Shown: positions 22,301 through 56,906, counted from the stretch's first letter. The stretch is 64,000 nt of DNA from Thalia democratica (GCA_965202585.1 OZ241834.1:29140001-29204000); one strand, 5' to 3'. Numbers and translations: made by a program. The notes: generated from the letters alone by a model not told the origin.

Positions 22301-24712
22301 TGTAAGGACCAAAAATGTAAAAGTTTTAAATAGTAATGACAGCATTTTCAGATTATTATTGTAAAAGTTAAAGCCTTCAACTTAGTTTACTGTATTTAAC
22401 TAAAGTTATGGCAACATTATAGTTGTTGTGTTTATAGTTTGAAAAGTATATAGATAACTTTGATAATAAGTTAAAAAGCTATATAGATAGCTTTAACATA
22501 GTTGTTAAAGTTTCTGAACAAATTTGAATTTTTTAAGGTATAAATGTTTCTTATTTATTGTTATTGAATATTTTAATATTACTCCAATATTTTTATTTAT
22601 ATTTACTTTGTAGAGCAATTGGTTGTAATTAGTACTGGGAAGGTACACTTCTTTGTTATCTATGATTATTTTTACATAAAAATCATTCAAGTTTTTATGA
22701 AATATCTATTTTTAACATTTTTATTCATTTTTAACATAAGAATACAGTCATAATTGTGATATAGTTCTAATTTGAAGATTACCTACATATTATATTTTAA
22801 CTTTATTGATAAAATACTAACTTTCGAATGGTTTTTATTTGGTGTAAAACAAATTTGTTGTTGAATATGGTCATAGTTTATCAATTTCAAAATAACATAG
22901 TAGGTAATACCAAATGTTTAATTTTTTGGTCAAATTGAATTTGTTTATACTTACTACTAATTCTAACATTAAAAAATATAATTGCCAAAGTTAGATAAGA
23001 AAATTGCCACACATCTTTCAAGCATGACATATTAAGTAAAACCAACTTTATTCAGTATTCAGAACTTATCTAGATCTTAAAATTCTAGACACTCCCACAA
23101 AGTAGGCATAAGAATTTAATCCCTGGTTTTATTAAGAGTTAACCAAACTATGAAATAATGTGTTGATTTGTTAAGGTGATTTTATCAAAAGCTCATATCT
23201 ATAGAAAGCTGCTGCTGTTAGCTGTAAATCAATAGCAATTAATAACATTAGGTGTTGTCCCCTAAATGGTCCAGATTATTAGTAAAACTTACCCCATAGA
23301 AACAAGAATGCTACTATATATACATTGCAATGATTAATAATGCTAAACCAAATTTTCAATAAAAATTAATTCTGAATATGGGCCAAAAAGACTATTTTAT
23401 ATTAATCATCATTGTATTAGAGATTTAAGTAGTATGAAAAAATAACAGTTTTATTAAAAAGTTATAATTTATTATAAAATATAACTTGTTTATTTTTAAT
23501 TTTATATTTGAAATAATATATGTTGAGTAATTTTATGAAATATTATTAAAAAATAAACAAAATTTATAGAAATTAACTATACTATGAACTTCTTAATTAT
23601 TGAATTTTGTTATCTTATATTATCAACAGTGCTGCAAATGGCAACTACTAAGTTTTGAGTGTTTTAAGCAGTTTTATAAAATTTTTCAAAATAATTAATA
23701 CTACTGCTCAGTTTGTTTTATCAGCCTTGTAAATTGCATTTTGTGGTTGAAATTTCAAGTCAAGCCAACAAATTATTAAATGTAAATATTTAAAAATTGT
23801 TCAATAACAGCAAAAATTTTCATTATAAATGTGTTGAATTGTTTTGGTAACAACTTAAGAAAATTATATGTAGAAAAACTATCTGAACAAACATAAATGC
23901 CACATCACCTGCTATGATACAGACTATTACTTAGGCATTAAACAATCTCTAGTAATTGAAATTAATAGATATTAATAAAATAAATTTATTTTAACCTTAC
24001 TGTTTGAAGTGGATTTAAATGATAAAATAATATGCAATAATATTAAATAATACACTGGGTCTATATGGGTATGTATGTTTTTTAATTTCTACCTTAAAGT
24101 TTATGGCATTGCAGTTTTGTATTATTGAATCAATGTTGTCAAAATCATTTGAAATCTGTGGTAATCAAATGTTTTTTAAGTGAATTTAAACCTATGAATT
24201 TCTATTCTTCTTATATAAAATCTTAAATAAAATTCTTAATTAAAATGTGCTTATTTTTGTACAGTCTACTAAACAGTGGTCAGAACACTTGTCTTAGCAT
24301 CAAAATTTAAATTCATGTTTTATAAAACATAGGAAGAATTTTTCAAAAAACATCTTTCTTGCAATACATTGTTCTAACTAAGGGGCATAGACATATAAGG
24401 AAAAAAAAAGCTTAAATTAGCCACATGATGATCACTTGAGTTTATTATAATTAAAAAGTATTTCAATAATCTATTACTGTAAAAAAATGGCAATGGTGTC
24501 TATTAGTATGTAAAAAAATAGTTGGTAACAATTTTATTTTGTCTGTGTGATGAAATTTCATACTTAAGTTATTGATTTTTTGATAAATTATTTTAACTGT
24601 TAACTAATTTGTTTATGATATAAACTTGTTTAATATTATCCACTGTCAAACCGTAAGTAAGATTTTCAATTTTTTTTCAACTAGTTAAATATTCACTAAA
24701 AATTTTAACTGT

Positions 24713-25172
24713 GGGGCACAAAATTTAAATCTTCGTTGCAATTGGCGGATTAAATGACAAAAAATTCTGACTAATTTATCAAAAAGTGTAATAATTTTCT
24801 AACTTTAAAATGTGTGTAGTTACAAGAAATTTATTTTAATATTCTTAAAATTGTCATATTTAATTGCAACAGAGGTTTAAATTTATTCACACCTACTTCC
24901 TCGTAGTGTGCCCTGGTTAACCACCATGTTATTGTTGCTAAGGGGTCCCCAAATTTGTTAAAAATTAACACTAGGTTCTTAAAACAAAACTGATATATGA
25001 AGGTTAATTTCAATTATTATAGATAAACCATAACTTGTATAGAAGTAGATGAAACGTTTATAAATAGTTCTTTGTATTATCACCATAAAATTTTCTGCAC
25101 CCTCTAAAACTAGTTGTCTTTGCAACCAGTTACTTAGCAACAATTGACTTACATTGTGGGCTAAATGGTGTG
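24713..25172 (+). ncRNA. HDV-like ribozyme, unit 1
   Basis: P1 GGGGCAC/GUGCCCU (G1-U wobble), P3 ACU/AGU, L3 UCCUCGU, P1.1 CC/GG, J4/2 GCUAA with C at 25161, P2 CACACC/GGUGUG, long J1/2 and P4 hairpins. Confidence 0.85.
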
Positions 25173-25501
25173 TCTGTAAATATTACATTATTGATGTTTT
25201 GTATATTTATTTGTTGCGTTTTAAATGTAAAATGGTTGTTCATGCTAAATTGTGTATTTGTTGTATAATAATTTTTTTTTTGTGGTCAATTTTTTTATTA
25301 CTAATTATAGTTATTGTGGTTGATATTTTTATTTTATTACTTTTCATGTAAAAAAATAGGGTTATCATTCCCTAAAAAAATGTTTGTTTTTTGTATATAT
25401 TGTACATAAGATCTTCGAGTTATTTTCCTAAAGCCGCCCTAAAAAGGTAAACCCTCAATGTAATAATTAAAAAAATTACAAAATTTATTGTTGTTGTTTT
25501 A

Positions 25502-25792
25502 TTTCGCTTGACTTATGTCATTAATCTGTCTGCGCGACAACCCTTGCGCACACAATGAATGTACAGATTTTTTAATTAAAATATTTTTAAGACATACTTG
25601 TGAATATTGTTTGAGTTGTGGGTTTAAATCTGCTTCATGTCTGAAAGCAGACCCATTAAGTTGTAAATAATTATTTGTTACTTTATAATTGTACGTTAAT
25701 TTTTATTTTTTTTGTAAAAGTTGTAGACATACTATTGGAAAATGTTTGAGTTGTGGGTTTAAATCTGCTTCATTTTCGAAAGCAGACCCATA
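25502..25792 (+). other. Conserved hairpin cluster downstream of the ribozyme (also ~33404-33674, ~43157-43402, ~51808-52100)
   Basis: tgcgcgacatcccttgcgca hairpin and gtgggtttaaatYtgcttc..gaaagcaRacccaY hairpin in all four units. Confidence 0.7.
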
Positions 25793-26529
25793 TAAATTTT
25801 ACATATATATTTGTTGTTCTAATTTTGGTTTAAATTTATTGTCTTGTTTTTTTGAATGCTGGAAACTATGTATGTTCTGTATAAGGTTCGTAAATCCCCT
25901 AATTTTATGATTTACGCTTGTAAATTTTGCATATAATTGGAAATAATAATTAATTATTTTTCTTAATAGTTTTAATGTCATGATGATATTCAACATAATA
26001 AGAGTAGAAGGAAATCTCTCTTTGTATTATATTATGTTTTTTTGATTTGTGCTCCTTGTTTTTTGTATTCGCTTAAAAAGAACTTTTGTTCTCTTGAGTT
26101 CATAAAAATTGCTCTGTTTGTAATATTTGTACAGATATTTTTTTTTTTTTAATTTCAAATTTTTGTTGTCTTTTTGTTTATTTTAATGATCGTTATCAAG
26201 TGAAAGTTGTGAGGAATTGTATATTTGTAAATATTCTTAGTTGTGTTTTTATTTGTGTAATTTTTTAAACTGATTTTATATTAGCAAAAACTTTTCACAA
26301 CCATGAAAGTTTCAATTTTTTGATCTTGTAAATTTGTACATATTTTTGTTCAACAATTTTAATTTACGCGTTTTATTTTTTTTGAGTCAAATATTTGACA
26401 TGTCTAAAGCCTGTATAACATAAAAAAAATTCGGGAAGAACCACCCGATGTATAAATTGTACATAAAAATTGTATTATTACCAAACACTTTTCAATTTTT
26501 GTCAAGACAACTTTTGTCGAGTTTTTTCA

Positions 26530-28825
26530 GCACCCCTGTGTTCGAGCATCAACATAGTTTCAAACCAGGGGAATTTACAACTCTCCCACAGATGTGCGCT
26601 CAACATTCAGTGTTTCAAAGATCAACATTACACTGAGTAAGATGCATCAATTTGCCAAAGGAGCTGTCTTCTTGTGGAAGTTGCCGATGTGATGGTTTCT
26701 CCAGATTCAGGAAAGGAACACGTCACGATGAACAGGAAAAGCGAAGGGCCCACGGATGCAGTCACGCAAGATCTGTTGCGTCACAAGGCTTTTTACTGCG
26801 CACACTGTTCCAAGTTCAAAAAGTTAGTTGCCTTAATTTTCAAAAAAACCGTTCAAATATCATTAAATGTTAAAAGCTGTATGTTTAAGTTGGTATTTCT
26901 AGCTAAATCTGGTTTCAAATTAATGTAACATTAGAATTATATATTTTTTTTTTAATTTGTTTGTATATAAAAACTAATCATCAACTATTACGTAATATTT
27001 AATTTATGTGTTAATTCTATTAATTTTAAATATAAATTTTTAGAGAATAAGTTTTTAATAACTAAACTAAATCGGTACTGACTTGTTAAGTTAAACAAAG
27101 ACTAATAAATAACAACTTTACAGAAAAAAATGCATCCATCAGCAGCAGTGGAAGCTGCACCTATTTATGACGTCATAAAGATAAGGGAAGGAGGCCAGCG
27201 GAGAGCCAGACCTCAGTTGATGCCTGAGGACCTGACGAGGTTTTCTGGAAGATCTACTGGCTGTTCAAAGCTGAGAAAATTTTCTGTGAACTCTAAGACT
27301 TGCTTCTTCATTAATTACATCAAATTCTACAAAGTTGGTTGGTTGTCTTTCTTTGGATAAACTATTTTTTTTAAGAGACTACAAATTAGCTGTTAAAAAT
27401 TGAATGTTAAGTAGATGAATAAATAATTAACTTGTATTAAAGATATAGTTCTATTGCCAGTTTTGATCTGTTTTAAAAATAATTATTTCATATTGAAATG
27501 CAATGTTTATTTCTGTTTTATTTTTACATATAATTTTAGCCATAACATAAATTTGTTTTTTAAATATCTAAAAGTAATTTTCAAACAGCAGGAAAGGCAA
27601 CCGAGAAAAGCCATCAGAAGATATAAGTGCTGACGGAGTTCGATCTTCATTAGAGTCCAGAAGAGCCATGTGGCGAACCACACAAGTGCAGCGGAGACAT
27701 CAGTCGGGCGGATTTCTTGTAGCAGAACTGATCTTTCGATGGCGTTCCAGCGTTCTCGTTCAGAATCACGACAAATAAGGAAAAACACAGCTTCCTCAAA
27801 GTTGTCTGATTTATCAACTTGTTCCAACAATCACCTTGGTTAGTTTGGTTTTGTTTGAATTATGAATAATTAAAGTTTTCATTATTTTTTGATAATAAAT
27901 TCGTTTAATTTTTCTATAGAAGTTTAAGTCTGTAAGCATTTCGTATTAAGTATGTCATTTATTGTGCTGCAAATTGTTTACTGTTTATAATTTAGATAGT
28001 TTTGTAAATGAATTTCACATGTTGTAAACTAACATCAAAAAAATAATCTGACAAAATCTGCAACAATTTCAAAACTAGTTGATATTTCTATTGTTTGAAA
28101 TTCAAGTATTTATTTGATTTCATTTTCAGTAAAAAGAATGAATTTTTAATCAATTCAGTTTAACGACTTATTAATTTATCAAAACAGGAAGCTGCAATCC
28201 ACAACAGCAGCAGACGCTTATTGAAGAAAGCAATCGTGCATGATCTAAAGAGTGCTGGTTGTGTTCTTCATCAAAGTTCATAGGAGCAGCCTAAAGTTAA
28301 CAGGAGCGTCTGAAGCCAGTGGATCAACGGATTCCTTGCACCACAATTCACCACAATTCACGAGATTTTCATTTGGTGATACCTTCCTGTTAAACACGCC
28401 CTCCTCTGATTTCATTTGAGTGCGAAAAATTCAACAATCAACTTGGTTGGTTGTTTTTGATCATTTAATTATGTGTTTTCCTTTAAAACTGAGTCTGCAT
28501 TCAGATTCTAAACTACTTAAATAAATTTTATGTTTCTTTCGTTTGCAATTAAAATAAGTAAACAAATTCTATTGAACTAAATATAGTAAATTTTATCTTC
28601 TATTTTATAACTTGAATATTATTTAACAGATAGACTGCAAGATTGTCCGAGCCAGGATAGATGAATGGACTATCATCGCGGACCAACATTGCAGACCATC
28701 ATTGCAGACCAACATTGTAGACCATTTTGTGGACCAGTACACACATGCGTTGTGGAGATGAGCGGAGAACGTTTGCGGTGCATGCAATTTAATAGTGTTG
28801 AATATTTTCTATTTCTTTTAATAAA
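26530..28825 (+). ncRNA. Unit 1 putative spliced non-coding exons B-F (~26530-26822, 27124-27337, 27589-27838, 28188-28445, 28630-AATAAA 28820)
   Basis: GC-richer islands bounded by (a)cAG and G|GTTRGT; no frame conserved across units. Confidence 0.55.
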
Positions 28826-31800
28826 TTTAAAAAATGAATACACATCGCGTTGTCTTATATAAGGGTTTATACTGTAGACGAAATAGGAGTTTTAACATCA
28901 AAATTAGATTGACGAGTATTTTTAGTGTCAAATATGGTTGAAAATCAACAAACTAAGTAGGAACATAGTCCTTAACTGATTAGAAACAAAGTTATAGTGC
29001 CACTAAATATTGTTCTTTTATAAACTTGACTAGAATACTACCTTCATCATGAAGTTTTACTATTTGGTTGAAACTTCAAAACTTCAAAATTTATTTTTAT
29101 AGTAAAGGGAACTTGGTTGATTTTGTTTGCAAAAGTAAATATAAAGTTTTGGTTGCAAGTACCAATACTAATTAGATCGTCATAATAAGAAAAAAAATTC
29201 TAAAATTCAAACGATTTAAGATGTGTTACAAACTACCTTAATTGAAGCTTTCACTGTCATCCTGAGGAGCTTTTGATTCGGCTAACAAAGTTTAAAAGAT
29301 TGTAAATTTAACAATTTACAGTCTCCCGATAATAGCGCAAAGCGAGTTTTAGAACTAAGTCAATATTTTGTCCTGGACATGACGTTAAACTGTCCTGGTG
29401 CATGACAACCGAAAGGTTTTTTGTGCACCAGGTCCTCAGACTAAACTTCTGGAGCATTTCTTGTCGCTGAAAATGTAGCATTTGGTATGAACAAAGTAAT
29501 GAGAATTGGTGCGCCTCAAGGTAAATTGAAATTTTTTTTTTTTGAATAACTCTTTTCTCAGGCCATAATTGTTGTTGTTAAATTAATTAATACTGATTCT
29601 CCGCGTATATTCTTAAACAGGCCTGTATTGTGTTTACATGACTATAGTTAAGCACAAAAATTTATACTGTTCACTGGAAACTATGCCTAAAATTTAAATT
29701 TCATTCATGTTAATTTATAAATATCTTGTATTTCCCCTTTGAGTTGGAACTGACTTGGCAACCGGTTCTGTAAAAATTTTTCCAAACTGCTAATTTAGGA
29801 TTCATCCCAACAGAAAAAAAAACAATTTAAAATATTCAGGACAACTCTGGCTAGTTACAACTATCTTCAGAAACTTCGTCGAGATTTTTCAAGTTTCTGG
29901 CTTGTTCTGGATAGTTCTGCTTAATTTAAGACCAGTTTATGATTCGAAATCTCGTTTTTCTTTAAAAAGGTGTTTTAGTTGAAACGATTTGTTATTTATG
30001 GAGTTTTCAGAGATTTAATGTTTATTGATATCTTTCAAGCATTCGGCTAATAAATTTTTATTTTCAACGCTAATTAAAGTTTTTAAAGGAAAATTTATTA
30101 CATTTAGGATAAGGTTTTTGATATGAAACAATGGCCACCACTATCACCAAAATTATTATTACATAGTTTGGTCATAGTATCATACAAAGAATAATAAAAA
30201 TTGTTAGGAAACGTGTTAACAAGCCAGCACACTACAATAAAAAAGGGGTTGCATCTTTTGGATTAGTGATAAGTTTATCAATCTTTTAAGAAGTAATATT
30301 GCGAACGATCAATTAAATAAACACTACTTATTTTTTACATGTAGGAATTCTGTTTGTATGCTAATTTTTTAAACTAGAATATTTTTGGATGTTGACTTCA
30401 ATTTATGTTATGAAAATGGCACGAGGGTTCTAGTAAAAGGATTGGCAGACTTATATTTAATTTTATTCATCATCAACATAAATGTTTAACTAGCAACTAT
30501 CATTGAGTAACCAATGAAAAAATGCACTAAAAACTATAAATAAAGAGCCTGAATAAAATTTTTTACAATATTAACGTTTTGATTTAAAAGTATACACTAG
30601 TCGAAAATAATACTGTCACAGCTTTACTATTTTGTAGACTGCATTTGCTAAATCCCCGTCTAGAAGATGCAAAGTCTCATTATACCAGCAATAGAGTTCT
30701 TAGCAGTCTTTCAATGTGATTTCAGCAGCTCCTGCGAAGAAGTCTCGATTGAATCAGTCATGCTTCTAATTTGCAAATCCTCAGCAAGTAAAAATATTTA
30801 GGTGTGGTGTAAAGACTGAAATTTCATCATATCCATTTCCACTGGCCGTGTTGTGAGAACGAAATAAACACTGAAACCGAAAAGTTAGCTGGTTAATAAT
30901 TTATTTATATACAAAATGTTATAATTTCAAGCTGAAAGCTACTTGTTTTTATCATTGACAATATCTATACATTTTAAAAACGTCTCTGAGTTTAGTCTTA
31001 ACCTTAAGTAATGGATTTTGACAAGTAATATTTTTCTCCAAACTAAAATATAAGTTTTTTTAACAACTTAATTGTTTAAGTAATGTATTTTATTAGTAGA
31101 ATATCAATGTTGTTATACTTTTGTTTTTCATGGTTTTAAAATTGATGCTAAGGTTTGATTTATATTTATTAAATTAATTTTATATGGCTGTAACTAGTTC
31201 CTTTGTTTTATTCAGGACATTCTAACTTATTACATTGTTTTAAAAAATAGTTTCATTTCGCTAAAAAGTACTAAAAAGGCATATGCTTTTGCTTTGCAGG
31301 CCGCATTTCACCGAGAGCCGTTTTAGAAGATGCAAAGTTCTAATAAGCCGCAAGTGGAGTCAACAAGCATCAATGTGATTCCAGCAGCTCCTGGGACGAA
31401 GTGTCAACTACTTCATTCGCCCCGTCATATGGAAAACGAGGTTGCAACGACAGAGTCTTCTGCAATTGTTTTTCTGCTGTGTTGTTTGGAAACCGTTCCA
31501 CTAGAAAACACTGAAACCTGCAAGTTAGCCGGTTAATAGATTATTTATCAACAAAACGTTGCTATTTTTAAAACATTTTTCAACTCAAAGGATAAAAAAT
31601 ATTTGAAAAAAACAGTGCAAATTGAATTTAGTCTTACTTTAGTGGTATATCTAGATACTTTACTGTACTAAAACAGATATAGTTTTGAATTAAATACAAA
31701 TAATTTAAGTGAAACAATTTATATTCATAATATATATCAAAATTGTGTAATTTTTTTTTTAAAGTTGATGGTACGATAAGTTTTATGTTAATTAAATAGT

Positions 31801-31917
31801 TTTTGTTTCATTAACTTTTGTTGGATTTTTATTATTAATATTATTAACTATATTTTCTTAGCTTAAAAACTGAAAAAAATACTTGTTTGTTAAATTATAA
31901 TATATTAATTTTCGTTG

Positions 31918-32100
31918 TAGGGTACAAAATTTAAATTTTCGTTTCAAAGCGAGGCCGACACTAACATTATTATCAAATTAACAAAAAATATCCTAAATTT
32001 ACTCTTTCTTAATAAAGTCTCTAGTTAACAAACAAAATAATTATTTCAATGTTTTTTGGAGTTGTAATGTTTAATTTAAACTTGTTTTGATTGATGATAA
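31918..32100 (+). pseudogene. Decayed ribozyme 5' half, unit 2
   Basis: agggtacaaaatttaaat..gaggccgacactaac resembles P1 and J1/2 of the unit-4 ribozyme; no P3/L3/P1' follows. Confidence 0.65.
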
Positions 32101-32509
32101 ATTTTTGATAAAAATAAAATTGTTTAACCACATTGTTACTTGGATATGTTTGTGTATAATATGTGTTTCTTAAGGTTTGTCTATTTGTTTATTTTCGAAA
32201 TTAAGTTTTTCTTAAAACTTAAAAAGCTTGTAAGATAAAAGAAACTAAAAACGGTTGACCAAAGTTAATTGGTTTGTATAAGTATGGTCGAAAAATAATT
32301 TGTAAAAATTTTATTGTGTCTGTTTGATTAAATTACATACAAAAGTTACTGGTTGTTTGATTAATTATATTAAACAGAACACATATATATTTATGCTCTA
32401 ATATTGAATTTTATTAATTTCTAAAAGACTAGCCACTGTCAAACCAAAAGTAAGGTTTTCAAAAATGTTTAAACTAATTAGTTTAATATTAACAACATGT
32501 ATTTAATGT

Positions 32510-32949
32510 GGGGTACAAAATTTAAACCTTCGTTGCAATTGGTGGATTTCATGACAAAAAATTCTGACTAATTTATCGAAAAGTTTAATAATTTAAAATG
32601 TGTCAAGTTTACAAGTAATTTATTTTAATATTTTTAGAATTGTCATGTTTAATTGCAACAGAGGTTTAAATTTATTCACACCGCTTCCTCGTTCAGTGTA
32701 CCCTGGAAACTTTGACGTTATTGTTGCTAGGTAATCCCCAAATTTGTTAAATACTGCCCACACTAAGTTCTTATAAAAAGAATCTTAAACTTCTTGAGTT
32801 TGTCTAAAATTAATATTAACAGAAGTAAATAAAACGTTTAAAAATAGATAAAGGTTCATAATACTTTCCTTGTAAACACCAAATAATTTTCACCCTTAAA
32901 AACCAGTTACCTAGCAACAAATAAATTTTCAAAGGCTAAAGGTGTGAAT
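32510..32949 (+). ncRNA. HDV-like ribozyme, unit 2
   Basis: P1 GGGGUAC/GUACCCU, P3 GCU/AGU, L3 UCCUCGUUC (2-nt insertion), GG, J4/2 GCUAA with C at 32936, P2 AUUCACACC/GGUGUGAAU. Confidence 0.8.
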
Positions 32950-35900: not shown

Positions 35901-36249
35901 GATGACGTGAATAGATCTAGATGACCTCATCAGATGTTCAGCTTGTAATGAGTCGAAAATTTTGAGTCGCATTAAAAGGTTCGCATGCTTTCTTCAAGAT
36001 AAAGAACTTTTAAACATTCAACTAAGCTGGTTAGTTGCTTTGAATTTTATTAAAAAACTATTTGTGACTTTATTAGTTTTTCCTTTTTAAAATTACTACC
36101 AAACATGAGCCTTAAATGATTTAATTATTAACTTTACAATCCATCTGCAGCAGATGTCCAAAGAAAGAGTTGGAGGAAATCTTCGAACGATGACTGAGGA
36201 GTCGCCGATGAAGAGCTCTCATGTTTGCAGTACAAATCTTCACCGGAAT

Positions 36250-36410
36250 ACTGATGTTATCCCGACACTGATGTCATCCCGACACTGATGTCATCCGAAC
36301 ACTGATGTCATCCCGACAATGATGACATCCCAACACGGAGGTCATCTCTACACGGAGGTCATTTCAACATTGAGGTCATCCCAACATTGATGTCATCTCA
36401 ACACTGAGAT
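36250..36410 (+). repeat. 17-bp minisatellite (ccgacactgatgtcatc, about 9 copies) inside unit-2 exon D
   Basis: Directly visible tandem copies; about one copy at the paralogous site ~45955. Confidence 0.85.
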
Positions 36411-39400: not shown

Positions 39401-39470
39401 CAAAGATATAAACGCGGCACATAACGTGTGCATAATTTTTAGTTTACACTAAAACTACTTTTTAGTTTTA

Positions 39471-42599: not shown

Positions 42600-42754
42600 G
42601 TAAATATTGTATATTTATTTGTTACAATTTGAATTAGTACTCATGCCTTACAAAATTGTATATTTGTTTATAAATATATCTGTTGTTTAATTATTAAGTT
42701 TTTTCTATTGTGTTATTGTTTTATTAATAATTATGGTTATTGTGGTTGATATTT

Positions 42755-43050
42755 TATTTTTAATTTATTAGTTTTTGTGTTGAAATTGCTGAGTTTTCCT
42801 GTAAAAAAAGGGTTATCATTCCCTAAAAAAATGTTTATTTTTTGTAAATGTCTTATTTTAAATTTATTAGTTTTTGAGTTGAAATTGCTGAGTTTTCCTG
42901 TAAAAAAAAGGGTTATCATTCCCGAAAAAAATGTTTATTTTTTGTAAATGTCTTATTTTAAATTTATTAGTTTTTGTGTTGAAATTGCTGAGTTTTCCTG
43001 TAAAAAAATAGGGTTATCATTCCCTAAAAAAATGTTTATTTTTTGTAAGT
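42755..43050 (+). repeat. ~97 bp tandem repeat, 3 copies (2 copies at ~33110-33300)
   Basis: Unit contains agggttatcattccct; single related motif in units 1 and 4. Confidence 0.85.
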
Positions 43051-46000: not shown

Positions 46001-48616
46001 ATTCTTCAGTTCTTTAACAGAATCAGACCTGACGAGATCTTCAAGAAGAAATGAATTCTTGAAATTCTCTGAATCATCAAAGAAAAAAAAAGGCTTCCAA
46101 TTAAGTTGGTTAGTTGATTTTATTTGAATAAATAGATAGATTAAGTTTTTTTTATTTAGTTTGTAAAAATTGCCAGTCCAATGCTATAGTTTTTTTTTTT
46201 GAAATATTTATTTATAACCAATTCGCATTGTTAAATTTTTTTGTTCAAATAATTGAATTTTGTTAGTAATCTGATGAAATCTAAGAAATATTTCGCGTAT
46301 AATTTTTTAATTAGTTAATATCAGAAATTTTTCTAAGGTTTAAATAAAAAAGTAAATTAATTCTATCGAAGTAAAGGTTATAGATATTTCATAAAAAACA
46401 AGTTTTAAGAGTTATTAATAAATTATTCACTTAGCAGGAAACTGCAATCGAGAATTACAGCGGCGAGAAAAAACTCCATTTCGGTGGAGGAAGAGCTGCT
46501 GACAAATCTTCATCGCGATGAAAAACACGTTGAGAGATCAGCGAATGCGTTGTACCGCGCGAGATCTTCAATTGGCCTTTTCTTCGTTCAAAATTAAGCT
46601 TGTGGAAAATAATAACGTGTCTCTTAATCGTGTTCAAACTAACATGAAGAAAGTTTCAACAATCAGCTCGGTTAGTTGCTTCTCAATGGTTTAGTTATTA
46701 TACAATATTCGTTTTATCAGAATGAAATTTAACATTTTGTACTTGGTTAAAACTATAATTGTGTGTTATCCAACCTGCTTATGTTTTTTATATGTATATT
46801 ATTTTTAAACAAAAGTTTTTGTAATCTTTTCATACTGTAAATAGTTTTTTGTAAAAGCAATTTATTTGATAGTTATGTTGAAAGCAAAACCTTAAAAAAT
46901 TAAAGCTGAGAAAAAGCACAGTTTCTGAACTTGAATAAATTTGATATTTCTTTCGTTTGCTATTAAAAATAAGTACATAACTTCTATTGAAATAAAAATA
47001 ATAAATGTTAATAAAAAAAAATTTCCAGATACACTGCAACATAGTCCAAGCCAGGACATTGAACTGATACAATCCCATTTCTGTGTAGATTTGGAGGTGT
47101 GGTCCAAGCCAGGACATGAAATTGAGACAATCCAATTTTTGAGTGGATTCGGAGAAGTGGTCCAAGCCAGGACAAGTTGCAACAAATTAAATATCGAGTT
47201 GACATTATGTTGATTACATTCTATTTTTATTAATAAATTTATGAAATAAATATCAATCGCGTTGTATTATATTAGAGTTAATTTATACCACTATATCAAA
47301 TAGACTAAATAGGAATTTATACTTACAATTTGGACTAGGAAATGTTTTAGGTGTCAAAATGTTAAAAACCGAAAAAAATTAATTAAGATCTTAATCCTTG
47401 GTTAGAAACAATTTCCTAATACCACCAAAAGTTTGAAATTTCTTAACTTTTGGCTTTTTTGCGAACTTGACTTGTTACAGCGTCTCGCACACAATTTTAT
47501 ACTATTTGAAAGAAACTTCAAAGTAAGGCTAATTATAATTTTAGTTAATTTGATTTTCCTTTTCAGTACTTGGAAGTTGTCACTAGAGAAAATTTGATAT
47601 TTTCTGCTTGTCATTATCATAATTTAAAAAAAGTGCCAAGTCTCAAAAGTTCTAGTGTCATTGGTAAAATGCAAGATACTGTGAAAGAACCTTTCACTGT
47701 TTATTTAAAGAGCTTGTGACAAGGCAAACAAAATTTTCAGAGATCGTATAACCATCATTTTCAGTCTCGTGAAAACAGTAAAACAAACAACAGAATATTA
47801 GGTCAAGTTAGTATGAGCAGTTTTATGAGACTTGATGCCTGTGACAAAAAATTATTTTTAAAAATGCCACATAAATCTGGTAGACATTTGTCCTGAACTT
47901 GGTGTGATAGTGAACTTTCGATCAATTAATTTTGTGATTCTCAGTATATATTTTTAATTGTTGCGGCTCCTTGAATCTTCGCGTTTAGGTTTTAGCATGT
48001 CTGAAAGTTATTAAAATAAAAGTACGCAACCTTTTTTTTACTGTTCACTGAAAACTGCTTAAGGTTAAATGTCATTTATGTTTGACACTAAATATCATCC
48101 CATTGGGTTGGAACTGACTTGGCAACCAGTTCTGTAAAAACTTTGCCTCTGCAAGGCCTTAAATTCAGAATCACTAGTGCGGAAATCAAAACAAAAAGTC
48201 TGGACTGTCTGGTTTTTGCAACGTACCTGTTTGTCTTGATACTTCTCTTAAAATACGGACAAGTTTTTTGAATTTAAATCTAGTGTTTTCCCTGAAATAC
48301 TGTTATTAATAAAGCATTTCTTATTTTGTTAGGGTTTTTGGATACCTAAGCTTGAACAGAAGTAAGTATTTTCAGTTTTTTATTATCTTCTCTCAAATCC
48401 GGCTACCTTAATTCAAGTTGTGTTGGTTTGTTTTTTGACCCAAACAATTCCAAAATTTAATACTATAAGTCTTATTGGTGCATTTCTAGATCCGAACAGC
48501 ATTTTATAAGTAATGACCAACGGGCCACACAATGAAAATCAGATAGTATAATCTTTTAATAAAAAAGTTTTAGTCAAATAATTTTATGGCAAGCAGTACT
48601 GTGAACTACCAATTAA

Positions 48617-49563
48617 GGGCATAGGGGGGGGGGTCCGAGTCCAACATTGTTTTTACAACTTTAATAAAACGTATGAACCGTAAGTTTTTCAAGGTCAATT
48701 TTCTCAGAAATTAAAAAAAATCTCTAAAAACCTATCTTCTTCTTCGATTTTTGAGATAGAGACCTCAAATTTTTAGGAAACGTTCCTTTTACAGATTAAA
48801 AGACTCTGAATGTTGGAATTATAAAATGTTATCAAATAAAAATTTTAGATAAAAATAACAAAAAAAAAGATGTTTTTTTTAATAAAACAGGGTTGCCACT
48901 TTACCTGGAAATTGACAATTTAGACAAAATAACCTGGAATTTAAGAAATTTTTAAAAAAACCTTGAAAAACTGGAATTTTTAAGAATTTTAGCATGTTCA
49001 GTAGTAAAACTTCAGTTTGACTCAAAAAATTTATCATATATATGAAAAATTTTTGTCATCACCAAAAATTTTTTTATTAGAAAAACACATTTTAAGTAGC
49101 TTTACATACAATTTAACACAGTTTCTTACCTTAAATTTAACTTTAAACTAAAAATAGATCTAAAAAATGTACTTTTAAAAACCTGGAAGAAAGTTGAGAA
49201 ACCTCGGAAAATTTTGAAAAAATGAGTGGCAATTAGATGGTTTTTTTAATAAAAATTTACTTTTCAAAATTAAAAAAATTCCTGCATTGAATCTTTTTAA
49301 AATTTAATAATACACTTTCTGTGAAAGTTTGAAGAAGATTGCATAAACCATGAAGGAGGAGATAGATTTTTAGTGAAATGGTCTTTTTTTAGCGTTTTTA
49401 GTTTGCGCCTTCCATTAGGAACCTATTTAAGTCACCGAATTTGATTGCTCATATCTGAAAAAATACTTTGTATTTTTTCAAGCAGTTAAAAATGTCTGGT
49501 TGCTCAGATATAACTGTAAAATAAGATAAATTTGTAAAAACCAAGGTGGACCCCCCTATGCCC
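48617..49563. mobile_element. Kolobok-like non-autonomous DNA transposon
   Basis: TIR GGGCATAGGGGGG..GGTCC / GGACCCCCCTATGCCC, perfect TTAA on both sides, purine-purine termini. Confidence 0.8.
48888..49233 (+). mobile_element. hAT-like MITE nested in the Kolobok-like element
   Basis: Left CAGGGTTGCCAC, right GTGGCAA (truncated). Confidence 0.7.
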
Positions 49564-50295: not shown

Positions 50296-50478
50296 CGTTC
50301 CGCTTGAAAACAACACTGTAACCGTTCCGCTTGAAAACAACACTGTAACCGTTCCGCTTGAAAACAACACTGTAACCGTTCCGCTTGAAAACAACACTGT
50401 AACCGTTCCGCTTGAAAACACTGCAACCGTTCCGCTTGAAAACACTGCAACCGTTCCGCTTGAAAGCACCGCAACCGT
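50296..50478 (+). repeat. 27/24-bp minisatellite (cgttccgcttgaaaac[aac]actgYaac, about 7 copies) inside unit-4 exon A
   Basis: Explains the repetitive ORFs at 50160-50498; single copy ccgttccactagaaaacactg in paralogous exons. Confidence 0.92.
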
Positions 50479-50895
50479 TTGAGGACGCCAACTGCCAAAC
50501 TGATACTAAACTAGAGACTCAACACTGAAACTAACTAGTTAGCTGTTCAACAACATATTTAAACTTTAATTTGTTTATTTTACAACACAAAAAACATTAA
50601 TATTAAAAAGAGTTTTACTTATTTAGTTTAATCTTAAGTAATGAATTTGGAATTGGTGTCTTGTTTACTGAACGAAAACTTTTTCTAATTTGAGTTATAA
50701 ACAATTAGTTTCATTATTAAACTTATTGTTCTTAATATATACATTTCAATATTTGGTAACTTGTTTTTTAGAAGTTTATATTTAACCAGAGTTTTATGTC
50801 AGTTAATAAAAAATGTTTTATTAACTCATGTAGGCTCAACCATAGTTTCTTAATTTGAATTTTTTTTTAATTTCTATTAAATCAAGTTCTATTGT

Positions 50896-51346
50896 GGGGC
50901 ACAAAATTTAAATCTTCGTTGCAACTGTTGAAGCTGACACTAAAATTCCTAACAAGTTAACTAAAACGATTTTTTTACTTAAATCACTTACTCCTAATAA
51001 AGTTTGCAATTGGCATATATTAATATTTTTATAATTGTCATGTTTAGTTGCAGCAGAGATTTAAATTTTATAACACCGGCTTCCTCGCAGCGTGTCCTGG
51101 GAAACTTTGATGTTATTGTTGCTAGGTAATTATGTTTAAAGCTGTCCACTTTAAGTTAACCAAAACACTGATATTAAAAGGTTCATTTAAAAAGAATATG
51201 GAGTTATATAAAGCTAAATCAAAAGTTAAACAATAATTTAGAAAAAACAGTTTCATAAAAATTTTATTTTCTCCCATCACCAAACTTTCGGGCACCCTTT
51301 TTAAACCAATTACCTAGCAACATTTCATCATAAGGCTAACGGTGTT
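50896..51346 (+). ncRNA. HDV-like ribozyme, unit 4 (most canonical)
   Basis: P1 GGGGCAC/GUGUCCU, P2 AACACCG/CGGUGUU, P3 GCU/AGC, L3 UCCUCGC, P1.1 CC/GG, J4/2 GCUAA with C at 51336. Confidence 0.9.
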
Positions 51347-54300
51347 TTGTATATATTGTATTTTTTAATATTGTTTTTTTTTAATATTGGTATGTAAAAT
51401 GAGTCCTTTGCCTTACAAAATTGTATATTTGTACATAAATGTTTTTGTTGTTTCATATATTTTTTGCTTATTATGAAATGTTAATATTTTTATTGTTAGT
51501 CAAGTTGTCATGGTTAATAAACGGGTTCTCAGTCCCTGCAAAATTCTGTCGTTGTACATAAAAGTGTGTTTCAATATTTTAATATGGTGATGTTTGTAGT
51601 TATTTATATTATTTGTTGTTGTGCTGAGATTTTAATTTTTTGCTAAAAATGAGCATATCACTTTTAAAAACACAGGGTTATAATTCCCTAAAAAAATTTT
51701 GTAAATATTATTGATATTTTTTTGTGTTGTTTTACTTGAATGTACTAGTTGGTAATCCCTCGAAAATATTTTACAATGTTAAATTCTTTATATTGATTGT
51801 TGTTATATTTCGCTCGACTTATGTCATTAGTCTGTCTGCGCGACATCCCTTGCGCACACAATGAATTGTATTTATTTTTTTTATAATTAATTTATAATCT
51901 TTTTGTAAAGATTTTTATTTGGAGCACTTTTGGAAAATGTTTGAATTGTGGGTTTAAATCTGCTTCATATTCGAAAGCAGACCCATTTTAATTGTACCTT
52001 AATTATTTTGTTTATTTTTTAAAGATTTCATTTGTCGCACTTTTGGAAAATGTTTGAATTTTGGGTTTAAATCTGCTTCATATCTGGAAGCAGACCCATT
52101 TAAATTGTACATTTTGTGTATTTTTTGTTGAGATGTTGTAATAAGGGCGCATGTCTGCAAAAATGTAAATATTTTAGTTGAACCTAATATTATTTCAAAG
52201 CGCTAAGCAATTGTACCTTTGATATTTTAGAATAAAATATCTGTTGAGAATAAATTTTTATGTTATTAAAAATTTTGTACAGAATTTTTTGTGAAACACG
52301 TATACAAAATTCGACTGAAAAGATGAGATTTTAAAAAATCCATCTTTTTAATGTACAGTATTTTGTTTCTATTATAGTTGAATTTAATTTTGTTGTCTTG
52401 TTTTTTGAATGCTGATAAGTATGTGAAGTTCTTTCTGTACAAGGTTTATAGATCCCCTATTTTAATGATTTATACTAAATTGTATATATTATAAATGATT
52501 ATTTTTTTTGAAAAATGTTGATTATTCCCTTACAATATTCTAAAAACAAAAGACCAAATTATTATAACTGCGTTTTATATAATTTCCTGCAAAGAATGGC
52601 AAACGATTTATCAAGTATTTCAAAACACAAACTTGGATATATATGTTATAAAACTTAATTTGTATGTACAATAAAACTGAAGAATCAGTATTTTTCATAA
52701 CGTTGTTGTATATTTGTACAGAAAGTTTTGTTTTCATTTAATATCGTGATACAAATAACCATAAAAAGAGAAGAAAGAAACATCTATTCTTTGTTTATTT
52801 TTCTTTGTATTTGATAATTTTTTTTTGTAAAGAACTTTTTGTTCGCTTATTGGTTCACAAGAAGTTTGTTCTATTTGTAAATTTGTACAGATATTTTTGT
52901 ATTGTTCATATATATTTTTGTATTTTGTAGAAGAAAAAAAAAACCATCTCTTTGTTTTTTTTTTTCTTGTTTTCTTATGACTTCTCTAAACCTACTTGTC
53001 CGCTTATAGATATTGGCTCTTTTGTAATATTTGTACATATTTTATTTTCTCATAAAAAACGTGTTTTTCTGCGCATAAATGCTTTTGAAACCGCGAAAGT
53101 TTTGAAAAAATATAAATTATTTACATGCTGAACTTAAGTTTAAAACCACCTAGAGTTTAAGTTTTGTTGAATTTACACTGAAAATATCTATTTGAATAAT
53201 TAAATTATTTTAAATTTACAAAACGTTTGGAAACTAAAATTTAGAAATGTAGTATCCTATCAAAGTATTATTTTAAAATTACTATCTTTTTAATTCAACG
53301 GGTATTCAATTAGAAATTAAAAACATATTTATCACATTATTAACAGCTTTTATAAAGGGGATTTTCAGTATATTTGTAATTTGTGTGTAAATTTGTAAAT
53401 AACTTTGTTTTATTATTTACGTCTAGAAAAAGTAACAGCCCACCATAAAAGAGTAGAAAAATCAGTTCTCTCTTTGTTGTAAATATTGTGTTTATCTTAG
53501 TTTTTACTATTTTATTTTATCCTGAATTTAATGTACTTGTAGTGAATGCATATTAATTTTGTTTACTTATATTGAGTTTTTATTGTGTTTTTGTTTATTT
53601 TATTAATTGTTATCAAGATGATAATCGTGAGAAATTGTATAAATGTAAATCTATTAAAATAAGTTCTTTACATCCCAGTAAATTGAGCGTTCTTTTGAAA
53701 TTAAGGCAAATAACTGTATATTTGTAAATATAATTAATTATGTGTTTTTATTTCTCCGTGTTTTTATTACAAACCTAGTCCTTGGATTGCAAAAAACTTT
53801 CATAACCATGAAAGTTTCATCAAACTTTTTGATTTTTTTTAAATATTGTACATATTTTTTGATTTGAATGATGCAGTATTTGAACATTTTAACTTCGAGT
53901 TGAATTCTTTAAGTTTTTATGAAACAACTTTGAAAACAAAAAAAAAACTCTTATAACTGCACCATTATTTGATTCGTCACCCTTGAATTTCAAGATCTAG
54001 TTTCAAACAAGGGAATTTCAGAACTCTTCCACAGAAAGTTCAGTATTTCGAAGATCAAATCTATACTGAATGAAGATGCAGCAACTTGCTCAAGGAGCTG
54101 ATCCTCAATGGCCTGTGGGAGAGGAGACACCGACGGAAGTTTCCTCAGAACTCCGGAGAACAGCAAGTTTGTGATAACGTGCCAGAAGTCTGTGGCGTCA
54201 AAAGACTTGTCTCTTAACAGCGGATCAAGCACATGTAAGTTGGTTGTTTTCCTTAAAAAATCAGAAATATAACATTGGTTATTAAATATTGAAAGTGAAG

Positions 54301-56906
54301 TAAAATATTTAAAAAATAAGTTTGTAATCAATAATTTATCAACTTTTAGTATTATTTTAAAATCAACCCGTTTGAAATTATTTTACTGTAACACGAAATA
54401 ATGTACAAAATCATGTTATAATGGAAAAAAAATTAGGCATTGTAATTAACTATAGTGCTACATTTCTATTGGAGCTATAAACTTATCGAAAATTTTTAAT
54501 AATCGTATAAATAGGTATTTATAGTTCATAAAAGTTATAGCAAACCTTGAGAAAAATTTGAGTGGTTAATTGATTAAAATTCTACAGCAAAAAAACTGCA
54601 TCCAACACCAACAACAGTGGAAAGAGACCGAGTGACGTCATCAAAGCAAGCAAAACGGTATGACGTCACATTAAAGCTTAAGGAAGTCAGCGGAGAGCTT
54701 GATAGACCCGAAATGGTTTCAGATAATGTTTCGAAGGTTTTGAGATAAGTTTGATGAAACTCAGAGACTCGCCGCAACAAAGCTTTTATTCTGAGCAAGT
54801 TGTTAGTGATTGTGTAAATATTTGTTCTTTTTAGAGATGCTGTAAAACAAGCTTAAAAGATTTTTAAGTCAATATTTTTTTAACAGGATATCGCGATCAA
54901 GAAGAACATCAGAAGAAGTGGAAAAATCTCTGAAGGATTGAAGATGAGTAGCCTGATGGAAATCATCCGAAGTTTCAAGAACATTTCAATGTGAATGAGC
55001 AGACCAGGACGAAGGTGAAGGGCCGTGATGCAGTTCATTGGCACTTCACGGGAATCAGATCTCCGAAAAAGATGTGTTCCTGGTCATAAATGTAGGAAAG
55101 AGTTGCTTCGTTATGCTTCCAGTTTAATATCATTCCACCAACCAACTTGGTTAGTTGCATTTATTAAACGAATAATTTAAAATTCTTTTATTTTGTCTTA
55201 AAATATTGACCGGTTCGATGTTAAAAGTATGTTTTTTTGAATATATATTTATAATCAATTTGCGCTGATTAAAATACATAACTTTGTATCCAATTAGTAT
55301 TTCTAGTATTTTCATGCTGCAATTTGTTTAGTGTTTACTTTATTTGTATAAACATAAATAAAAACTAAATGTGACAAAAATCTACACAATTTCTGAATTA
55401 TAGTTAACAGTTTCTATGTTGAAAATGAGCGAATATTTTCTATCGAAGTAATAAAACTATCATGAACATTAAATTTTGAAGTATCATAAGTAATTATAAA
55501 CATAAACAGGAAACTGCGATCAGCAACAGCAGCAGATGTCATCAAAAGAAAATAATCTTGCATGAAAGAGGAACTGCTGTGTTAATTCTTCATGCAAGAT
55601 CATTCAAAAGCAGATCATCAAAAGGTGAACGGAGCGTCATCACTGGAGCTGGTGGAGAAGTTTGGAGAGATCATGGATAACGAGATCTTCCACTGATGAT
55701 GATTTCCTGTACATATGCAGATGGTAGGAAAACATGGCTTCCTACAATGTTCTCTCTGTTAAGCAAACTTGAACAATCAACTCGGTTGGTTCTTAATTAT
55801 TACATTTTATCGTTTTACCAATGTAAAATTGATCATTGGGTTTTTGGGTAAAAGGATAAAAGTATGTTATATAGTATTTGTATGTTTATACAAGTATAGT
55901 GCATTTAAGCAAAAGTGTTTCTAATAAACTCTTTAAAAAAATTTTGCTCAAAAGAATTTTGTATAATACTTTCGAATGGACATCTTGTAAGCATAAACTG
56001 AGAAAAGTCTGCATGCATCTGAGTTAACTAATAAATACATGTTTCTATCGTTTGCAAATAAACACAAGTACACAAATTTAATCGTAATAAAATCAAAATA
56101 TTGTTTTCTAGTTTGTAATATCAACATAATTCAACAGATACACTGCAAGGATCGTCCGAGCCAGGAGGGCGAGTTGCCAGGAGGGTGAGACAATCCTGTT
56201 TCTGTGTGGATTTGGAGAAGTGGTCCAAGCCAGGAGGATGAGTGAATTGCAACTACATCAGTTGATATTTTCATATACTTGATTTTTTTTCTATTCACAA
56301 TAAAATATAATAATGTATATTTGTCGAGTTATTTTTATTTAGTTTAATAACTATTTTCATATGTTCAAATACCGGACTGCCAAGAATAAACAAATCTACA
56401 ACAACTTAGTTAAATAAATTACGAGAAAGTTAAGTAACAACCTCAAAAAAACAAGATTAAATATGTAAATGCATATTGCTTACATTTTAAATACAATCAA
56501 TTACTTAATATAGTGTTTCTTAAAGCTGCCGGTACACTAGCTTAAGCTTTTCTTTTACAGAATGAATACGTATAAAATAAATAAATAGTAAATTAAGTAA
56601 GTAATAAAAATGATTTTAGTCAGTACTTACTAAGCTTAGTTATGACAATAATAGCTAAATTAGCTACATTGTATTTGAAGATGTGTATAGAAAATAAAAA
56701 TTTATGTAATGAATTGTAGTATTCACAAATTAAGACTGAGCTGATTAGAAATTCGGAATGATTATAAAATATGTTATAAAATGTTTTTAATTTTTCTTTT
56801 ATTTAAAGTCGTTTGTAAATGTCATTTATGATGAAATAAAATTAGTATGCTGTTTTTAAATTAAACAAAATATTATGTTGAAGTTAACAAATAAAAATCT
56901 AAAGTC

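Follow-up and report, generated by a model that had tools for sequence, protein, structure and literature searches.

Why should an HDV-like ribozyme recur at the same place in tandemly repeated, apparently spliced non-coding units that carry no RT? This question is raised by a 64,000-nt stretch of the genome of the tunicate Thalia democratica (GCA_965202585.1 OZ241834.1:29140001-29204000; 802-Mb assembly), which is referred to here as the window. The tandem array of ribozyme-bearing units claimed in the original prediction was borne out: four units of 8-10 kb follow each other between 24.5 and 57 kb, starting near 24494, 32270, 41909 and 50875 (units 1-4), with the ribozymes on the plus strand at homologous positions. 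The array is specific to this locus in the 802-Mb genome. Units 2 and 3 are ~86% identical to each other, and units 1 and 4 show ~60-70% identity to these two. The unit order that had been proposed (A'/A exons, ribozyme, U-rich segment, exons B to F, AATAAA) held in part. Ribozyme, leader, block B and terminal exon F are common to all four units, F being conserved together with its AATAAA in units 1, 2 and 4, whereas A'/A blocks exist in only two. Because the shared module begins at the ribozyme and A'/A is confined to two units, the ribozyme can be regarded as the constant start of the unit.

The four ribozyme copies lie on the plus strand at 24713-25174 (unit 1, 462 nt), 32510-32948 (unit 2, 439 nt), 42150-42598 (unit 3, 449 nt) and 50896-51348 (unit 4, 453 nt), each beginning with the predicted cleavage-site G (G1 at 24713, 32510, 42150 and 50896). 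Explicit strand extraction recovered the nested double pseudoknot P1-(J1/2)-P2-P3-L3-P3'-P1'-P1.1-P4-J4/2-P2' from every copy, and this layout is identical across paralogs that are otherwise ~35-60% diverged. P1 pairs at seven of seven positions with a closing G1·U in each copy (GGGGCAC/GTGCCCT in unit 1, GGGGTAC/GTACCCT in unit 2, GGGGCAC/GTGTCCT in unit 4), and P2 comprises 6-8 bp (AACACC/GGTGTT in unit 4). The L3 sequence UUCCUC (at 24897 in unit 1) and the GG directly after P1' are invariant, with the CC of L3 facing this GG as P1.1. J4/2 reads G-C-U-A-A-(A/AU/C) directly before GGUGUG/GGUGUU in all copies and places the predicted catalytic C at 25161, 32936, 42586 and 51336. P3 consists of 4 bp in unit 1. 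The copies of units 2-4 form three pairs around an internal mismatch, and those of units 2 and 3 also contain a 2-nt bulge; this weak P3 counts against a ribozyme. Two large closed hairpins are inserted into the fold, namely P1.2 (160-169 nt), whose base is a covarying stem of 24 bp, and P4 (229-244 nt).

A strict HDV-type descriptor identified the copies of units 1-3 on the plus strand of the window and none on the minus strand. The same descriptor gave 11 matches in 300 simulated 64-kb windows, a background of 0.037 per window versus the three real matches. The copy of unit 4 is missed solely owing to a single bulged nucleotide in the basal part of P4. Rfam models (HDV, CPEB3 and the drz families) yielded no match in the window, either at the gathering threshold or at E<=10, and RF00094 yielded none over the whole genome. 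This miss is plausibly caused by the 160-245 nt insertions and by pseudoknots that are absent from the models; a match to an Rfam model is not a defining feature of the HDV-like class.

Pair tables, computed by script and with RNAalifold, revealed compensatory changes in at least nine pairs over P1, P2, P3, P4 and P1.2 among the four sequences, which represent about three lineages. They include double changes from C-G to U-A in P1, from C-G to A-U in P2 and from A-U to G-C in one pair of P3, as well as three pairs at the base and one in the stem of P4 and two in the P1.2 stem. G·U pairs in these helices arise only if the plus strand is read as RNA. Invariant columns amount to 66% in the core, 84% in the P1.2 stem and 54% in the P4 stem, compared with 26-29% in the 300-nt flanks and the P4 interior. 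Such a pattern supports a genuine-looking HDV-like ribozyme under purifying selection, for which cleavage is predicted. The label of a new system, given in the original prediction, is overstated: both the ribozyme class and the kinds of peripheral insertions are already known, and it is the genomic context that is new.

Each ribozyme is followed by a conserved, U-rich and structured leader of 1.3-2.6 kb on the plus strand, located at 25175-26520 (unit 1), 32949-35169 (unit 2), 42599-44880 (unit 3) and 51349-53980 (unit 4). The fraction of T reaches 0.44-0.46 in the leader versus 0.37 in the whole window. Its hairpins are conserved (25620 and 25755 in unit 1, 33637 in unit 2, 51950 and 52063 in unit 4), one of them with a compensatory pair. 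GC blocks are located at 25531, 33435 and 51837 in units 1, 2 and 4, and 100-bp repeats occupy 33104-33299 in unit 2.

Downstream of the leader, a series of GC-rich, exon-like blocks is found on the plus strand. Block B is located at 26524-26822 in unit 1, where it ends at a donor-like AAA/GTTAGTTG, at 35170-35495 in unit 2 (5' limit approximate, donor-like site at 35496), at 44882-45200 in unit 3 and at 53983-54234 in unit 4. In unit 2, the following blocks were placed: block C (35797-36029) has an acceptor ttttacag/ and a donor /GTTAGT, block D (36151-36542) contains a 17-nt tandem repeat, both being non-coding, and block E (36867-37089) is duplicated at 37840-38060 and has a copy in unit 3 at 46438-46669. 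Terminal exon F was located at 28630-28840 (unit 1, AATAAA at 28820), 38436-38640 (unit 2, AATAAA at 38620) and 56138-56320 (unit 4, AATAAA at 56299); its acceptor ACAG/ATACACTGCA and the subsequent AATAAA are conserved in these three units. Since AATAAA is common in AT-rich DNA (77 occurrences on the plus strand of the array), the motif is informative only by its position after the conserved terminal exon. In all four units, GC-rich blocks end in donor-like sites of the form TTG/GTTAGTTG (GTTAGT), and such sites mark the transitions from GC-rich to AT-rich sequence on the plus strand of every unit. Candidate exons were read from the sequence, and the units look spliced. Over positions 32200-38199, four DNA-like runs gave short contigs without GT..AG joints or pile-ups of starts or ends, and contigs of 'Organism B' were identical or paralog-like and contained no usable ortholog.

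The claim that these units are spliced-looking and non-coding was supported by the donor-like sites of all four units and by stops in all frames. Coding potential was considered and rejected: tblastn matches between units occur in all frames of both strands and contain stops, and in the exon-like blocks every frame is interrupted, substitutions are spread evenly over codon phases and indel lengths are not multiples of three. In three copies of block E, an ORF of 51 codons stays open, yet it shows frame-shifting indels and no excess of third-position changes. One piece matched the Pfam domain Tcp10_C (E 4e-12); this match was judged spurious and probably reflects a 27-nt tandem repeat at 50296-50465.

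A search for the ribozyme outside the array, as the original prediction had suggested, was conducted by BLAST, pattern and profile searches over the 802-Mb assembly. It detected no dispersed copies and one further tandem array, on C7, which together with the four copies described here accounts for all ribozyme loci. The C7 array comprises 26 ribozyme copies in 16.4-kb units and carries a compact version of 182 nt with the same architecture, a textbook P3 (GCC/GGC) and the L3 sequence UCCUCGU. There, the ribozyme is situated in the spacer of an unrelated tandem gene array; it shares the strand of the unit's coding exons and follows their stop codon and AATAAA at a distance of ~1.6 kb. G1 directly adjoins an A-tract of 22-49 nt. 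The units of C7 and C10 exhibit no homology except for the ribozyme core and interspersed repeats, and no common repeat containing this ribozyme was found in the genome. On C8, the core pattern matched the genome a fifth time, within a coding exon and without ribozyme features, and a metagenome scan for the P2-L3 motif returned 26 chance matches, none of which had a P1/P1.1 partner.

The reading that we favour, at somewhat short of even confidence, is that each unit would be a non-coding gene of the RNA polymerase II type that is headed by a selected, HDV-like self-cleaving ribozyme, with G1 as the mature 5' end. In this model, the ribozyme would fold as a nested double pseudoknot that is pinched shut by the peripheral hairpins P1.2 and P4, and cleavage would occur immediately 5' of G1. 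Whatever precedes G1 in the transcript would be cut off, whether it stems from read-through of the preceding unit, from the A'/A exons or from a short leader with a cap. The RNA that remains would carry a 5'-OH and begin with the folded ribozyme, run through the U-rich leader into block B and then undergo splicing from B to F and polyadenylation. Transcription, self-cleavage, splicing and a mature 5' end at G1 are all features that we infer. No promoter was identified; a TATA-like, AT-rich motif is located ~27 nt upstream of G1 in units 1-3 and ~22 nt upstream in unit 4, and it means little because the DNA is 75% AT. An uncapped polymerase II RNA with a 5'-OH would need other protection or spliced-leader trans-splicing, which counts against a gene headed by a ribozyme. 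Spliced-leader trans-splicing is used by Thalia democratica to resolve polycistronic RNA.

On a broader and more tentative view, a host-domesticated family of HDV-like ribozymes might mark unit boundaries in large tandem gene arrays of this pelagic tunicate. In the present array, a lncRNA that is spliced and polyadenylated would owe its 5' end to the ribozyme, whose fold would replace the cap and be followed by the conserved structured leader on a kilobase scale. If so, eukaryotic HDV-like ribozymes would occupy a third niche, besides the 5' processing of retrotransposons and the CPEB3 intron, and read-through RNAs cut at two successive ribozymes would carry a 5'-OH and a 2',3'-cyclic phosphate and could be circularised.

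Less likely is a CPEB3-like arrangement, in which transcription would start at A'/A, the ribozyme and the U-rich segment would be part of an A-to-B intron and the competition of self-cleavage with splicing would set how much of the lncRNA is made. Exon-like blocks A' (40277-40423) and A (40916-41170) are indeed present on the plus strand upstream of ribozyme 3, and a paralogous pair is located at ~30640-30787 and 31300-31523 upstream of ribozyme 2, so that A'/A blocks with acceptor-like and donor-like sites precede these two ribozymes by 1-2 kb. The original prediction had argued for monomers cut to start at G1 on the grounds that segment B lacks a conserved acceptor; this argument is weak, as TTCAG and other AG sites are retained in block B of all four units, and the conserved TTCAG could serve as an acceptor and render the ribozyme intronic in units 2 and 3. 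However, A'/A blocks are absent upstream of ribozymes 1 and 4, so that the constant module starts at the ribozyme, and no part of the unit is better conserved than the supposed intron, which contains covarying hairpins.

It appears rather improbable that the ribozyme acts mainly as a unit separator, cutting read-through transcripts between tandem genes and thereby preventing chimeric splicing, aiding termination or releasing unit-length RNAs. In the last case, the products, with a 5'-OH at one end and a 2',3'-cyclic phosphate at the other, could be joined into circles. This explanation draws on C7, where the spacer of another tandem gene array, unrelated to this one, contains a related ribozyme, and on the fact that both ribozyme loci in the 802-Mb genome are tandem arrays. 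Two loci are few, however, and arrays may simply have amplified their contents. Moreover, 5'-3' exonucleases act poorly on a 5'-OH end, which disfavours termination driven by such enzymes.

There is little to recommend the idea that a structured element, RNA or DNA, has been conserved and resembles the HDV fold without cleaving. The weak P3 of three copies and the missing Rfam match would fit such a mimic, but the catalytic positions are invariant (G1·U, CC in L3, GG in P1.1 and the J4/2 C within G-C-U-A-A), and the C7 ribozyme repeats the architecture with a GCC/GGC P3 and the L3 UCCUCGU.

The remaining explanation concerns mobile elements. That RT/EN is missing, as originally claimed, was confirmed in two ways: a Pfam scan detected no RT/EN domains in 127 stop-free pieces of the window, and tblastn with 20 EN/RT ORFs of this genome detected no remnants (best E 0.88 in the window). 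No dispersed copies, as expected for a ribozyme-led non-LTR retrotransposon, are present in the 802-Mb assembly, and A-runs of at least 10 are absent from the unit ends in the window. One abundant non-LTR family could be traced to its 5' end; it begins with the spliced-leader-like TTGAATAAG and not with a ribozyme. In another non-LTR family, traced to a point short of its 5' end, loose-descriptor matches proved to be AT-rich false positives inside coding sequence. Retrozymes and satellite-type ribozyme repeats have non-coding units below ~1.5 kb with one ribozyme each, amplified by retrotransposition, whereas the units described here measure 8-10 kb, show an intron-like structure and occur at a single locus. 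Two decayed partial copies of the ribozyme 5' part, at 41562-41720 and 31919-32080 on the plus strand, retain P1 and the 5' strand of P1.2 and have no catalytic core. Although these decayed copies, the A-tract abutting G1 on C7, which resembles a retroelement junction, and the typical position of HDV-like ribozymes at the 5' ends of R2, RTE and L1Tc (PMC3774820, PMC3185411) are reminiscent of a functionless relic of a non-LTR or non-autonomous retroelement that was inserted once before the duplications, this is the least credible of the readings, given the lack of RT/EN remnants even with the genome's own elements as queries, of genome copies beyond the two arrays, of a closing poly(A) or A-run on the units in the window and of a ribozyme in the abundant non-LTR family. 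Neutral decay of one old insertion, the scenario that the original prediction had named as its refutation, is contradicted because core and stems are far better conserved than the flanks and helix changes are compensated; nor does any common repeat share the ribozyme.

The proposed gene headed by its own ribozyme can be compared with several known systems. Like R2-type 5' ribozymes, the array ribozyme forms a nested double pseudoknot with a very long J1/2 and predicted cleavage at its own 5' end (PMC3774820), and its core is close to the antigenomic HDV/R2 consensus (L3 UCCUCG, J4/2 C-U-A-A). In silkmoth R2 ribozymes, J1/2 loops span 216-498 nt (PMC3774820). Unlike R2-type elements, the array has no RT/EN ORF, dispersed copies, rDNA target or poly(A), a leader that is structured and non-coding comes after its ribozyme, together with exons that look spliced, and a P4 of 229-244 nt exists beside the long J1/2. 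In the trypanosomatid retrotransposon L1Tc, the 77-nt Pr77/L1TcRz, a dual promoter-ribozyme, likewise coincides with the start of the transcription unit (PMC3383444), a start that is predicted for the array, where promoter activity would be pure conjecture. Hammerhead tandem repeats and retrozymes also carry one ribozyme per unit and may yield unit-length RNAs with 5'-OH and 2',3'-cyclic phosphate ends (PMC7229834, PMC4918200), as the array might, but they belong to another ribozyme class, with units of 0.2-1.5 kb and many mobilised copies, in contrast to the 8-10 kb units with putative introns at one locus.

The mammalian CPEB3 ribozyme is similarly HDV-like and resides in a host polymerase II unit with introns and without a mobile element, as is proposed for the array. 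It is ~68 nt long, single-copy and located in the intron of a protein-coding gene, whereas the array has four paralogs of ~450 nt heading non-coding units. To our knowledge, little has been learned of what eukaryotic HDV-like ribozymes do beyond deltaviruses, retrotransposons and the CPEB3 intron. The ribozyme described here seems to serve the host's own RNAs, and a direct test of such host use, either at lncRNA 5' ends or in the separation of tandem transcripts, is possible because four diverged paralogs share a fixed core and compensated helices, have no RT nearby, keep a fixed position and are accompanied by a second, related ribozyme in another tandem array.

Among ribozymes with a structured J1/2, the drz-Agam-2 family is retrotransposon-associated in mosquitoes. 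The array ribozyme shares with drz-Agam-2-1 a stable J1/2 helix that joins P1 and P2 (PMC4908430), here the 24-bp covarying base stem, and differs from it by a P1.2 of ~160 nt and by not being associated with a transposable element. It is established that a large, structured J1/2 domain (P1.2) can activate a natural HDV-like ribozyme (PMC4908430), and the copies described here extend the size range of natural HDV-like ribozymes that possess both a large P1.2 and a large P4.

Self-comparison of the window resolves four units on one strand, starting near positions 24494, 32270, 41909 and 50875, in agreement with the tandem array of the original prediction. Units 2 and 3 are the products of a recent ~9.7-kb duplication with breakpoints near 30352, 40039 and ~49700 and have an identity of about 86%. 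Units 1 and 4 go back much further; to the extent that they align, identity falls to about 60-70%. All four share a "head" composed of the ribozyme (G1 at 24713, 32510, 42150 and 50896), a T-rich segment of 1.3-2.6 kb and an exon-like block B, and the terminal exon is likewise counted among the common parts. When a unit was compared with the whole AT-rich, 802-Mb assembly by BLAST (GC content 23-32% in 2-kb bins), the matches were confined to the array itself and two interspersed repeats, one at 39471-39867 and one near 39141-39237; the array is therefore a local segmental array and not a dispersed element. The first of these repeats, of ~390 bp, also occurs at 48966-49222 and 57645-57816 and has thousands of genomic copies (6620 first-look candidates), while the second measures ~90 bp. 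Both are located in the spacer that follows the terminal exon, and neither gave a match to hammerhead or other Rfam models.

The ribozyme has the same arrangement in all four units, is encoded on the forward strand and measures 439-462 nt. Its elements are, in order, the cleavage site with G1 and then GGG(C/U)AC of P1, an inserted hairpin P1.2 of 160-169 nt, the 5' strand of P2 with (UU)CACACC, a short P3 closing the loop L3 (UUCCUC), P1' with GU(G/A)(C/U)CCU, P1.1 (GG), the junction N-AA-C, a P4 domain of 229-244 nt, J4/2 with G-C-U-A-A-(N) and P2' with GGUGU(G/U). P1 forms seven of seven base pairs in every copy, including a G1·U wobble; P2 has 6-8 bp and P3 is imperfect in units 2-4. L3 and J4/2 are laid out like the core of antigenomic HDV and R2, and the J4/2 C lies at 25161, 32936, 42586 and 51336 in units 1-4. 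Rfam models did not match the motif in the window, as is to be expected from its two large insertions. A strict descriptor demanded a G-led P1 of 7 bp, TCC in L3, a P3 with two or more pairs, GG, a P4 base with four or more pairs, G-C-N-A-A and a P2 of 6 bp, while tolerating inserts of up to about 320 nt. This search retrieved units 1-3 on the forward strand of the window and nothing on the reverse strand, against a background of 11 matches in 300 composition-matched simulated windows; unit 4 fails solely because a U is bulged at the base of P4. According to PMC3774820, a single underlined U is all that distinguishes the R2 active-site consensus from antigenomic HDV. Structured J1/2 domains of large size have been described and are activating (PMC4908430), and silkmoth R2 ribozymes carry J1/2 loops of 216-498 nt (PMC3774820); the window architecture is thus an extreme case within a known kind.

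The helices are maintained by double changes among the four paralogs, which effectively represent three lineages. Pair 5 of P1 is U-A in units 2 and 3 versus C-G in units 1 and 4, a P2 pair is A-U in unit 4 versus C-G in units 1-3, and pair 2 of P3 is G-C in units 2-4 versus A-U in unit 1. At the P4 base, three pairs of unit 1 differ from the other copies, and a P4 stem pair is A-U in unit 1 versus G-C elsewhere. Within the P1.2 stem, one pair runs through U-A, U·G and C-G and another changes from U-A to C-G. RNAalifold independently recovers a 24-bp base stem of P1.2 as well as an 18-bp P4 stem and the P4 base, and the G·U pairs require the forward strand as RNA. Conservation, expressed as the share of alignment columns invariant in all four copies, follows this fold: it reaches 84% in the P1.2 stem, 66% in the core and 54% in the P4 stem, compared with 29% in the P4 interior, 26% in the 300 nt upstream of G1 and 29% in the 300 nt downstream of P2'. 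The element is very probably a functional HDV-like ribozyme, and we regard this assignment as strong.

Genome-wide searches that used the ribozyme itself, a pattern of its core or a sequence profile returned the four window copies, a second array and one further match, which sits in a coding exon and is due to chance. The genome search proposed with the original prediction hence revealed no dispersed copies, and it did uncover a second home of the ribozyme on another contig, C7, where the core profile gave a weak but repeated match. The C7 ribozyme is a compact HDV-like fold of 182 nt (for example C7:65,955,347 to 65,955,166, minus strand) and passes the same strict descriptor. It consists of P1 (GGGUCAU/AUGACCC), a P1.2 hairpin of 110 nt (-38.6 kcal/mol), P2 (UCUCACGUC/GGCGUGGGA), P3 (GCC/GGC), L3 (UCCUCGU), P1.1 (GG), P4 (CCGCC/GGCGG) and J4/2 (G-C-C-A-A-A-C). 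The motif AAAUUUAUUC-N-CAC...UCCUCG is common to both arrays; its 29 genome-wide matches comprise 26 on C7 and three in the window, where unit 4 is the copy that differs, and a reversed-pattern control gave none. The C7 array holds 26 copies spaced ~16.4 kb apart and split between one block at 64.31-64.39 Mb and another at 65.75-66.08 Mb (G000:C7:64,312,489-64,394,604 and 65,746,197-66,077,350, minus strand, loci L015, L022, L023 and L024-L049). The ribozyme sequence is identical in 20 of the 26, the others differing at one or two positions (one was not extracted). No homology beyond the ribozyme is shared with the window units, and no RT was found in the C7 unit. On the ribozyme strand, this unit shows coding-looking exons, comprising a coiled-coil segment, two further exons, a stop codon and AATAAA; their end lies about 1.6 kb before the next ribozyme, which is located in the spacer. 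In 25 of 26 copies an A-tract directly precedes G1, with at most one T between them; among the 18 copies that have this T, the tract is 22-49 nt long. If cleaved, the RNA upstream of the C7 ribozyme would end in templated oligo(A).

In the window, the segment following the ribozyme has a T content of 0.44-0.46. In the comparison of units 2 and 3 no other part of the unit is conserved as well, with 97-100% identity in several 100-nt bins. Some blocks in this segment vary little or not at all among the four units; one of them, the hairpin GGGUUUAAAU(C/U)UGCUU...AAGCA(G/A)ACCC, occurs in six copies with one compensatory pair. The GC-richer blocks after this leader are preceded by acceptor-like sites, and in every unit they terminate, precisely at the change from GC to AT, in donors of the type TTG/GTTAGTTG. 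The terminal exon acceptor ACAG/AUACACUGCA is kept in units 1, 2 and 4 and is followed by AATAAA after about 190 nt (units 1 and 2, at 28820 and 38620) or 165 nt (unit 4, at 56299). The exon-like blocks are interrupted by stops in every frame, their substitutions are distributed equally among the codon phases, and their indels measure 1, 2, 4, 8, 10 and 31 nt; tblastn between units gives matches in all frames and on both strands. The blocks are thus non-coding, and the proposed multi-exon non-coding gene fits the sequence. Block D of unit 2 contains a 17-nt tandem repeat, ACTGATGTCATCCCAAC (36250-36407, 9.3 copies), which in unit 3 has shrunk to roughly the length of one repeat; 17 nt as a period is incompatible with coding.

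For the window ribozyme, we infer a model in which it defines the 5' end of the unit RNA, a reading that we favor tentatively because the module common to all units begins at the ribozyme. The RNA would then begin at G1, extend across the leader to block B, undergo splicing as far as F and receive its poly(A) about 20 nt past the AATAAA. The argument originally advanced for this model, a block B lacking a conserved acceptor, does not hold, as AG sites such as TTCAG are kept in block B of all four units. These sites would instead suit a ribozyme that acts as a regulator within an intron between exons A and B. Exons A'/A, whose acceptor-like and donor-like sites are good, are found only upstream of ribozymes 2 and 3 and are absent upstream of ribozymes 1 and 4, so that such an intron cannot be the general context as judged from the sequence. 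Compared with a ribozyme-defined 5' end, the intronic role is considered unlikely. Somewhat less probable still is a role as separator between the units of tandem arrays, suggested by the fact that both homes of the ribozyme family are large same-strand arrays. TATA-like motifs (TTAAATATT, TTTAATATTA, CTATTAAAT) occur at 24683-24692, 32480-32490, 42120-42130 and 50871-50880, preceding G1 by about 27 nt in units 1-3 and by about 22 nt in unit 4; they could place a transcription start at or just before the cleavage site, though such motifs carry little weight in 75% AT DNA. The novelty lies in context and size, within a known ribozyme class.

The predicted lack of RT was borne out: stop-free pieces of at least 45 aa in 24400-58000 on both strands contain no RT/EN domain, and tblastn with 20 EN/RT ORFs of the genome's own elements gave a best E value of 0.88 in the window. 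No A-run closes the units in the window. Partial copies of the ribozyme 5' part at 31919 and 41562 have lost the core and show the appearance of unselected copies. A single old insertion with neutral decay since is contradicted by the structured conservation and compensated helices, taken together with the absence of RT/EN, dispersal and an A-run, and a ribozyme outside a retrotransposon context is well supported. An abundant non-LTR family of this genome (~992-aa EN/RT) begins with TTGAATAAG (5' ends at L099:3440-3470 and L101:3464-3494, two loci of the assembly), which is similar to the ascidian spliced leader at its 3' end. Such a start suggests that trans-splicing, and not a ribozyme, supplies the 5' end of retroelement RNAs here.

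A metagenome scan for the ribozyme motif returned chance matches only. The spacer before unit 4 carries a GC-rich 27-nt tandem repeat (50296-50465, 6.5 copies), which probably produced a spurious Pfam Tcp10_C match. Exons of a choline-transporter-like (SLC44/CTL) gene were identified by eye at 1299-1667 and 5698-5946 on the minus strand, on the basis of the motif YDPDFRGP...RKCTD and a membrane helix after it. This gene is oriented leftwards, with the ribozyme array at least 17 kb upstream of it, and between its two ORF pieces lie 7-8 copies of a ~110-bp tandem repeat (3189-4488) with the conserved core CGAAGTAGTAGAGGAAGGGCTTGTCACTGAAG.
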